NCBI RefSeq assembly: GCF_001194135.2
Contig: NC_068996.1
Span: 43,801,399 to 43,839,771 of the forward strand
Reading direction: 5' to 3'
Source of the DNA: Octopus bimaculoides
Lineage: Eukaryota
Length of the DNA: 38,373 nt
In this document: piece by piece, positions 25,687 to 25,882 of the stretch
Numbering within the stretch: the first letter of the stretch is position 1
Layout of the letters: the number at the start of each line of letters is the position of its first letter
Notes under the pieces: model-generated
Told to the model about the DNA's origin: nothing
What the model saw: only the letters and a program-made list of their open reading frames with translations
Databases searched by the model: none
Position numbers and translations under genes: made by a program

Positions 25687-25882
25687 GCTTGGGGCTAGTT
25701 ATGGAACTCTGTTCTGGTCGTTGTTTAGCTTAACTCAGCTAAAAGATATCAAGATTGAAGATGGACCGAAATTTACAGAATTAATGGGCGAAATCTTGTT
25801 CATGGCATACCATGCCATGGCTATCATTGTTTTAATCAATATGTTAATTGCTATGATGTCAAATTCATATCAAGAAATTGAG
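25687..25882 (+). CDS. TRPC: TRPC-family cation channel, internal exon B (pore helix, filter, S6)
   Basis: Acceptor ttttcag ends at 25686; donor GTAAGT at 25883. AC from exon A plus G gives Thr, then LGASYGTLFWSLFSLTQLKDIKIEDGPKFTELMGEILFMAYHAMAIIVLINMLIAMMSNSYQEIE. This includes the LFW pore-helix motif and the S6 motif NMLIAMMSNSYQ. Confidence 0.96.

Follow-up and report, generated by a model that had tools for sequence, protein, structure and literature searches.

A serine codon in the selectivity filter of an octopus TRPC channel gene as a candidate site of adenosine-to-inosine recoding

The selectivity filter of an octopus TRPC channel is encoded with a serine at a position where vertebrate TRPC4 and TRPC5 have a glycine, and one adenosine-to-inosine (A-to-I) change would turn the one residue into the other. 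The adenosine concerned, A25727, lies within a 38,373-nucleotide stretch of Octopus bimaculoides DNA (NC_068996.1, positions 43,801,399 to 43,839,771 of the forward strand; the whole stretch is called the window, and positions are counted from its first letter). Sequence comparison identifies the gene as the octopus TRPC "transient-receptor-potential-like protein", a member of a bilaterian clade that includes C. elegans TRP-1. On balance, A25727 appears to represent, in octopus, a site of coleoid A-to-I recoding, with edited subunits carrying the canonical Gly, and it is a probable addition to the known class of such sites, at an unusually informative position. Two observations carry the argument: the orthologous base is read as A or G in RNA of a second cephalopod, and the codon sits in the block of lowest synonymous divergence between the two species.

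The pore exon, which encodes the pore helix, the selectivity filter and S6, occupies 25687-25882 on the plus strand between an acceptor AG at 25685-86 and a donor GT at 25883-84. Its translation is LGASYGTLFWSLFSLTQLKDIKIEDGPKFTELMGEILFMAYHAMAIIVLINMLIAMMSNSYQEIE (abbreviated, LGASYGTLFWSLFSL...LINMLIAMMSNSYQEIE or LGASYGTLFWSLFSLTQLKDIK...SYQEIE). The LFW pore-helix signature and the filter residues that follow it, LFWSLFSL, are encoded at 25709-25732 of the same strand (CTG TTC TGG TCG TTG TTT AGC TTA), and the second Ser codon, AGC at 25727-25729, stands at the position of TRPC4 Gly577. Because TTT directly precedes AGC, the candidate base A25727 is flanked by U on its 5' side and G on its 3' side. 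Deamination of A25727 would change AGC to IGC, to be decoded as Gly. The motif, the codon and its U-A-G context had all been reported in a sequence-only reading of the window, and the splice sites and translation bear them out.

The same reading had supposed that the canonical TRPC Gly at this position forms the filter, and that premise holds. In a HMMER alignment the octopus pore Ser faces the Gly of LFWSIFGL in solved TRPC4 structures. In mouse TRPC4, where LFW comprises residues 571-573, the selectivity filter contains a residue, Gly577, that "marks a restriction point" (PMC6079076); the TRPC5 equivalent is Gly581, and a G581A mutant is hardly activatable (PMC6656536). Since the octopus Ser is aligned to this constriction, the structural reasoning is sound. 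The further statement that Drosophila TRP reads LFWSxFGL stands for the Gly and calls for a small correction at the fourth position, where the many insect TRPC sequences surveyed, which were not individually assigned to TRP or TRPL, have Ala (LFWASFGL).

The RNA evidence comes from six spliced full-length contigs of a second cephalopod (L001-L006, 3.2-3.5 kb), taken from Logan assemblies of six RNA sequencing runs that fall into two accession series (SRR8281678 and SRR8281679; SRR29271457, SRR29271467, SRR29271468 and SRR29271476). Its protein is 94.1% identical to that of O. vulgaris (Argonauta, 97.6%; Haliotis and a chiton, ~74-76%), its coding DNA is 79-86% identical to the window, and 133 of 254 codons capable of synonymous change differ from octopus (52%), which is near saturation. 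On this divergence the species lies outside the group of Octopus and Argonauta; a decapodiform is probable, and a cuttlefish possible.

Over more than 3.2 kb the six contigs differ by only five substitutions, all of them sense-strand A/G, the remaining differences being a 4-nt indel in the 5' untranslated region and one 63-nt cassette exon. Numbered along an open reading frame of 921 residues, the five sites are codon 331 (synonymous, context G-A-U), codon 563 (Ser/Gly in the S5-pore linker, A-A-G, equivalent to window position 16493), codon 587, codon 670 (Ile/Val after the TRP box, U-A-U, equivalent to 29522) and codon 689 (Arg/Gly, U-A-G). Codon 587 is the pore codon itself, TTT-AGC/GGC, with the same TTT-AGC as the window and the same U-A-G context; at its variable base (position 2162 of L004) G is read in four of the six contigs and A in the other two. 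In one contig all five variable sites are A, and the rest show various combinations. Coleoid recoding typically produces S>G, I>V and R>G changes.

The S3-S5 exon and its intron flanks are also represented in a genomic contig of the same species (ERR3431203). At codon 563, for which two of the six RNA contigs give G, this contig has A; among the five sites it is codon 563, and not the pore site, at which genomic A is thus confirmed. Over about 445 exon bases this contig differs from the RNA contigs by two C/T changes and no others, so that real single-nucleotide polymorphisms (SNPs) in the gene are unlike the A/G-only variation of the transcripts. Five out of five sense-strand A/G differences would arise from ordinary SNPs with a probability of roughly 0.004, if such changes are assumed to make up about one third of SNPs. 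The heterogeneity of the pore codon in the second cephalopod is thus very probably A-to-I editing rather than an SNP, to judge from the assembled contigs.

Octopus has A at the equivalents of codons 563 and 670. At the equivalent of codon 689 it has CGA, and editing to Gly is therefore not available there. Five residues beyond the filter Ser, window position 25743 lies in a Lys codon (AAA) that is AGA (Arg) in all of L001-L006; this A/G difference may reflect either a substitution in the genome or editing close to completion in the second cephalopod. The 63-nt cassette exon (21 residues, RPTYNGKKMC.PPK..QLHYQ) lies between the TRP-box and coiled-coil exons and is alternative in both cephalopods, distinguishing L001 and L003-L006 from L002, and the Octopus isoform P0312 from P0313 and P0317. 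It gave no tblastn match in the window downstream of 29641, and lies either beyond 38373 or in the assembly gap at 33400-33707.

Conservation at the nucleotide level gives indirect grounds for extending the argument to octopus. The block of low synonymous divergence, at 25709-25767 on the plus strand, may act as a cis element in editing; the two species differ in it at just two positions, 25738 (synonymous) and 25743 (the Lys/Arg change). When the 254 informative codons of the three exons in the window are scanned in 18-codon windows, the eight least diverged all fall inside 25694-25772, and only 4 of the 21 informative codons in 25700-25768 are different, compared with 52% across the whole set (binomial P=0.0019). 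The AGC codon with its 5' U and 3' G is the same in both species, which thus share neighbours of the kind that ADAR favours (U or A over G on the 5' side, and G on the 3' side). Divergence is ordinary in the opening 22 bases of the pore exon and around codons 563 and 670, which argues against a general exon-end effect and singles out the pore site as the conserved one. Conservation of the flanks at shared editing sites is reportedly a coleoid signature, described by Liscovitch-Brauer and co-workers in 2017. It is thus rather likely, from this comparison of the two genes, that octopus edits A25727 too.

In a consensus fold of the two species, 25715-25731 pairs with 25751-25768 and A25727 with U25756; positions 25738 and 25743, at which the species differ, fall in its unpaired apical part, and the G/A difference at 25768 pairs with U25715 either way. 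In the octopus sequence alone, a perfect 7-bp hairpin (UUUAGCU/AGCUAAA) pairs A25727 with U25740 (P=0.99).

In the explanation we favour, ADAR would act on A25727 in the precursor messenger RNA (pre-mRNA) or the messenger RNA, the ribosome would take IGC as GGC, and a subset of subunits would then carry the canonical Gly. The channel is tetrameric, and partial editing would therefore give pores with 0 to 4 Gly residues; mixed Ser/Gly filters would be expected to differ in width and hence in permeation or activation, an expectation to which the strong effect of G581A in TRPC5 lends indirect support. Squid recoding in conserved domains leans towards residues common in other species (PMC4384741), and Gly is the residue most often found at the filter position. 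A bolder version is put forward only tentatively: that the site is ancient, dating from the octopod-decapod ancestor, that coleoids alone among molluscs re-create the Gly in their RNA over a far older genomic Ser, and that mixed tetramers, dependent on tissue or temperature, give a graded Ca2+ permeability.

A number of observations weigh against editing of the octopus base. About one in 16 adenosines lies in UAG, so the context by itself is not beyond chance, and an AGY Ser codon (Y, C or T) would be expected anyway where a site toggles between Ser and Gly. The 7-bp hairpin is not conserved, two substitutions breaking it in the very species that shows G, and the local and consensus folds are no stabler than shuffled sequences (z = -0.5 to -0.6). 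Scans for a partner forming double-stranded RNA (dsRNA) in the introns, of which the upstream one is partly gap, and in the whole complementary DNA gave only background-level hits driven by composition, and therefore no editing-complementary sequence is claimed. Octopus transcripts of this TRPC gene were absent from the 13 members of its 90% cluster, where octopus is represented by genome models. Gastropods, chitons and nematode TRP-1 tolerate Ser well, and Gly is thus not needed. Finally, the pore allele of the second cephalopod tracks the accession series, with A in both SRR82816xx runs and G in the four SRR292714xx runs; such a split would occur once in 15 if random, and a fixed DNA difference between stocks would give the same.

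The distribution of the two residues among relatives was surveyed by extracting the pore motif from about 300 sequences. Gly is the commonest residue at the filter position and is found in scallops, mussels, oysters, Dreissena, Tegillarca, arthropods, nemerteans, other annelids and deuterostomes. Ser is found in four octopod models, in all gastropods sampled (at least 11: Lymnaea, Biomphalaria, Physella, Bradybaena, Candidula, Haliotis, Littorina, Patella, Lottia, Elysia and Nucella), in the chiton Liolophura, the bivalves Potamilus and Mya, the annelid Owenia, a trematode and chromadorean nematodes, including C. elegans TRP-1 (LLWSLFSI). All Ser codons that were read in DNA are of the AGY type: octopus, the second cephalopod and Lymnaea use AGC, and the chiton and two molluscan contigs use AGT. 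It follows that Ser and Gly have been swapped repeatedly through single A/G transitions. Judged from these sequences, Ser was most likely present already in the molluscan ancestor of cephalopods, and the edit would therefore be "restorative" only relative to a much deeper ancestor.

This distribution lends itself to a simpler account, which we regard as possible but doubtful, namely that Ser is the fixed filter residue of a molluscan TRPC lineage, that octopus has no meaningful editing, that its U-A-G is a matter of chance with a prior of about one in 16, and that editing is specific to the other cephalopod. The sequence-only reading had itself warned that Ser might simply be fixed in this subclade, and genomic AGY Ser in the four octopods, the gastropods, the chiton and some bivalves justifies the warning and indicates that a Ser channel works. 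In addition, the octopus hairpin would lock A25727 in a structure that competes with the fold shared with the second cephalopod, and the absence of flanking conservation at codons 563 and 670, where octopus has A, indicates that turnover of sites between lineages is real. However, synonymous constraint is strongest in the block that contains the Ser codon, which is hard to explain without action at the RNA level in both lineages, and the codon and both neighbouring bases equal those of the species that shows G. The sequence-only reading would have given up editing at A25727 on finding no A>G signal together with genomic Ser in molluscs that do not edit; the genomic Ser is there, but G is present at the orthologous base in four of six contigs of a related cephalopod. 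The editing proposal is partly supported, the site being a real candidate that is backed by RNA of a relative and by its constrained flanks.

If A25727 is edited, it may still be no tuning switch, the edit either restoring the deep-ancestral Gly in a "harm-permitting" or restorative manner or persisting as a tolerated by-product, an outcome that we consider rather unlikely. Gly is the majority residue among arthropod, annelid, nemertean and deuterostome members of the clade, and the repeated Ser/Gly swaps in bivalves, nematodes and Owenia suggest that both residues work. The part of PMC8382921 that discusses Jiang and Zhang 2019 describes coleoid restorative sites as commoner and more strongly edited, as this account would have it. 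Against it, the "restored" Gly would be very old if the molluscan ancestor had Ser, and a harm-permitting history favours genomic A-to-G replacement, yet A is kept in four octopod models and in two of the six RNA contigs. The synonymous constraint moreover implies selection that keeps an RNA element.

The split of the pore allele by accession series (A in SRR8281678 and SRR8281679; G in SRR29271457, SRR29271467, SRR29271468 and SRR29271476) would be accounted for if the Ser/Gly difference were a DNA polymorphism between stocks or populations and no coleoid edited the base. This is improbable: the rest of the sequence, more than 3.2 kb, is identical in the two series, yet the one DNA contig differs at two of about 445 exon bases; a lone SNP would need to strike the most conserved residue of the pore; the difference is a sense-strand A/G in UAG, of a kind with the four non-pore sites, which vary within an accession series; and the synonymous constraint is independent of whether the variation is SNP or editing. 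A recent paralogue as the source of the G contigs is rejected, the contigs being identical save for the five A/G sites, the cassette exon and the 4-nt indel.

Text searches of the searchable literature brought up no account of editing at a TRPC or TRP filter site in cephalopods, nor of TRPC editing in them more generally; such a site may sit unremarked in published editome tables. The O. bimaculoides rows listed from the recoding table of Cell Rep 2023 hold no TRPC entry, and no TRP entry is among the rows listed from the supplements of eLife 2015, MBE 2021 and Nat Commun 2022. A 2026 survey of cephalopod TRP channels is silent on the pore and on editing of this TRPC gene, and its supplements are without sequences.

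The assignment of the gene rests on the three TRPC exons that tblastn found in the window. The first (16080-16524, plus strand; AG 16078-79, GT 16525-26) encodes S3-S5 and ends in phase 2, its last two bases forming a Thr codon with G25687; it is 100% identical in tblastn to residues 426-572 of Octopus P0312 and matches Pfam Ion_trans with E=8e-27. The exon downstream of the pore exon (29429-29641, plus strand; AG 29427-28, GT 29642-43; located by tblastn) encodes the TRP box and the proximal C-terminus, the TRP box, of EWKFAR type, standing directly after S6 and being encoded at 29441-29473. Together the three exons give 284 residues, which carry the six-transmembrane Ion_trans match (E=8e-27) and have TRPC4 and TRPC5 as their nearest solved structures (E=1e-87 to 1e-84). 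They correspond exactly to residues 426-708 of octopus P0312 save for the first residue at two tblastn junctions, the two mismatches being places where tblastn overran the splice sites. With the same exception, the encoded residues are identical to the genome models XP_029648709.1 (Octopus vulgaris / O. sinensis) and XP_052829685.1 (O. bimaculoides), and the Argonauta hians model differs by a single residue in this stretch (LVCRC vs LICRC), its pore exon being identical. The N-terminal ankyrin repeats and TRP_2 domain lie outside the window, in the full-length octopus proteins (Pfam PF08344 and PF12796; cluster representative P0195). Full-length relatives were reached with a chimeric query of 826 residues, the members of the best clusters then being listed. 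An exact look-up of the S3-S5 open reading frame of the window in a protein collection gave no match.

The pore exon is flanked by a long and almost perfect inverted repeat, the upstream arm of which (24762-25110, plus strand), in the preceding intron, runs into the assembly gap at 25112-25468, and pairs with a downstream arm (26598-26797, plus strand) in the following intron. Two segments of these arms are strongly complementary: 24762-24878 with 26681-26797 (117 nt, 93% complementary, duplex energy -181 kcal/mol) and 25025-25110 with 26598-26683 (86 nt, 91%, -138 kcal/mol). The predicted duplex may form strong dsRNA in the pre-mRNA around the pore exon and may serve ADAR recruitment, exon skipping or circularisation. 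It is built of copies of an interspersed repeat and therefore cannot explain the conserved site. This repeat is about 330 bp long, contains a (CA)n tract within it, looks like a short interspersed nuclear element (SINE) and has at least 10 intronic copies in both orientations, 71-96% identical to 16601-17000; they lie at 2556-2708, 6492-6820, 8124-8274, 9857-10038, 12668-13079, 16601-16945, 24829-25110, 26540-26730, 28183-29084 and 36911-37211.

Six assembly gaps (runs of N) interrupt the window, at 1015-1881, 2709-2808, 23249-23567, 25112-25468, 26935-27641 and 33400-33707; two lie within 220 bp and 1.05 kb of the pore exon, and the search for an intronic complementary sequence is limited accordingly. 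Trinucleotide microsatellites stand on both sides of that exon, (ATT)n and (ATC)n upstream at 25565-25670 and (GGC)n and (ATC)n downstream at 25900-26330, and a GC-rich tract just after the donor has the lowest duplex energy with the exon block, a composition effect. Elsewhere, an open reading frame of 108 residues (4691-5017, plus strand), with the end ...PPYALDIALSDYHFFGSLQN..., has no Pfam match at E<=0.01; its end resembles the C-terminal part of mariner-type transposases, and it is probably a decayed transposon remnant in an intron.

Coleoid recoding sites number tens of thousands, and very few of them come with a clear, testable functional prediction. Ser or Gly at the filter constriction is a simple two-allele case with a defined readout in the Ca2+/Na+ permeability ratio (PCa/PNa), conductance and activation, and evolution has supplied natural controls with Ser in gastropods, chitons and nematodes and with Gly in scallops, mussels, arthropods and vertebrates. 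If octopus edits the base too, the site would be a conserved one with local synonymous constraint and a good example of the cost that retaining editing is claimed to impose on genome evolution in cephalopods. The debate on whether recoding is an adaptation or is only tolerated continues (PMC8382921), and a Ser-to-Gly edit laid over an older genomic Ser would bear on the choice between harm-permitting and adaptive accounts considered there.

Four known systems invite comparison. TRPC4 Gly577 and TRPC5 Gly581 of vertebrates occupy the homologous position, after LFW and then S-I-F-G, at the upper constriction, but there the Gly is encoded in the genome and invariant, whereas the octopus genome encodes Ser and Gly would appear only in edited RNA. 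C. elegans TRP-1 and the gastropod orthologues are members of the TRPC clade to which the octopus channel belongs (identity of 49-65% across the chimeric query) and, like octopus, have genomic Ser (LLWSLFSI, LFWSMFSL); to our knowledge their lineages are not noted for mass recoding. The coleoid channel and pump sites of squid and octopus Kv and the Na+/K+-ATPase (PMC4384741) resemble the candidate TRPC site in organisms, enzyme class and type of change, and share with it mosaic transcript combinations and conserved flanks. A functional analogy is offered by the Q/R site of GluA2 (GRIA2) in vertebrate AMPA receptors, a case of A-to-I recoding at the narrowest point of the pore loop in a tetrameric cation channel, where edited and unedited subunits co-assemble and Ca2+ permeability is altered in consequence. 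GluA2 belongs to a different superfamily, and Q->R adds a charge whereas S->G drops a small polar side chain; its site is edited to ~100% with a mapped intronic complementary sequence, whereas the octopus scans gave no partner and the contigs of the second cephalopod suggest a variable majority allele. If the ancient, mixed-tetramer reading were true, the octopus filter would be the TRP-channel counterpart of the GluA2 Q/R switch.
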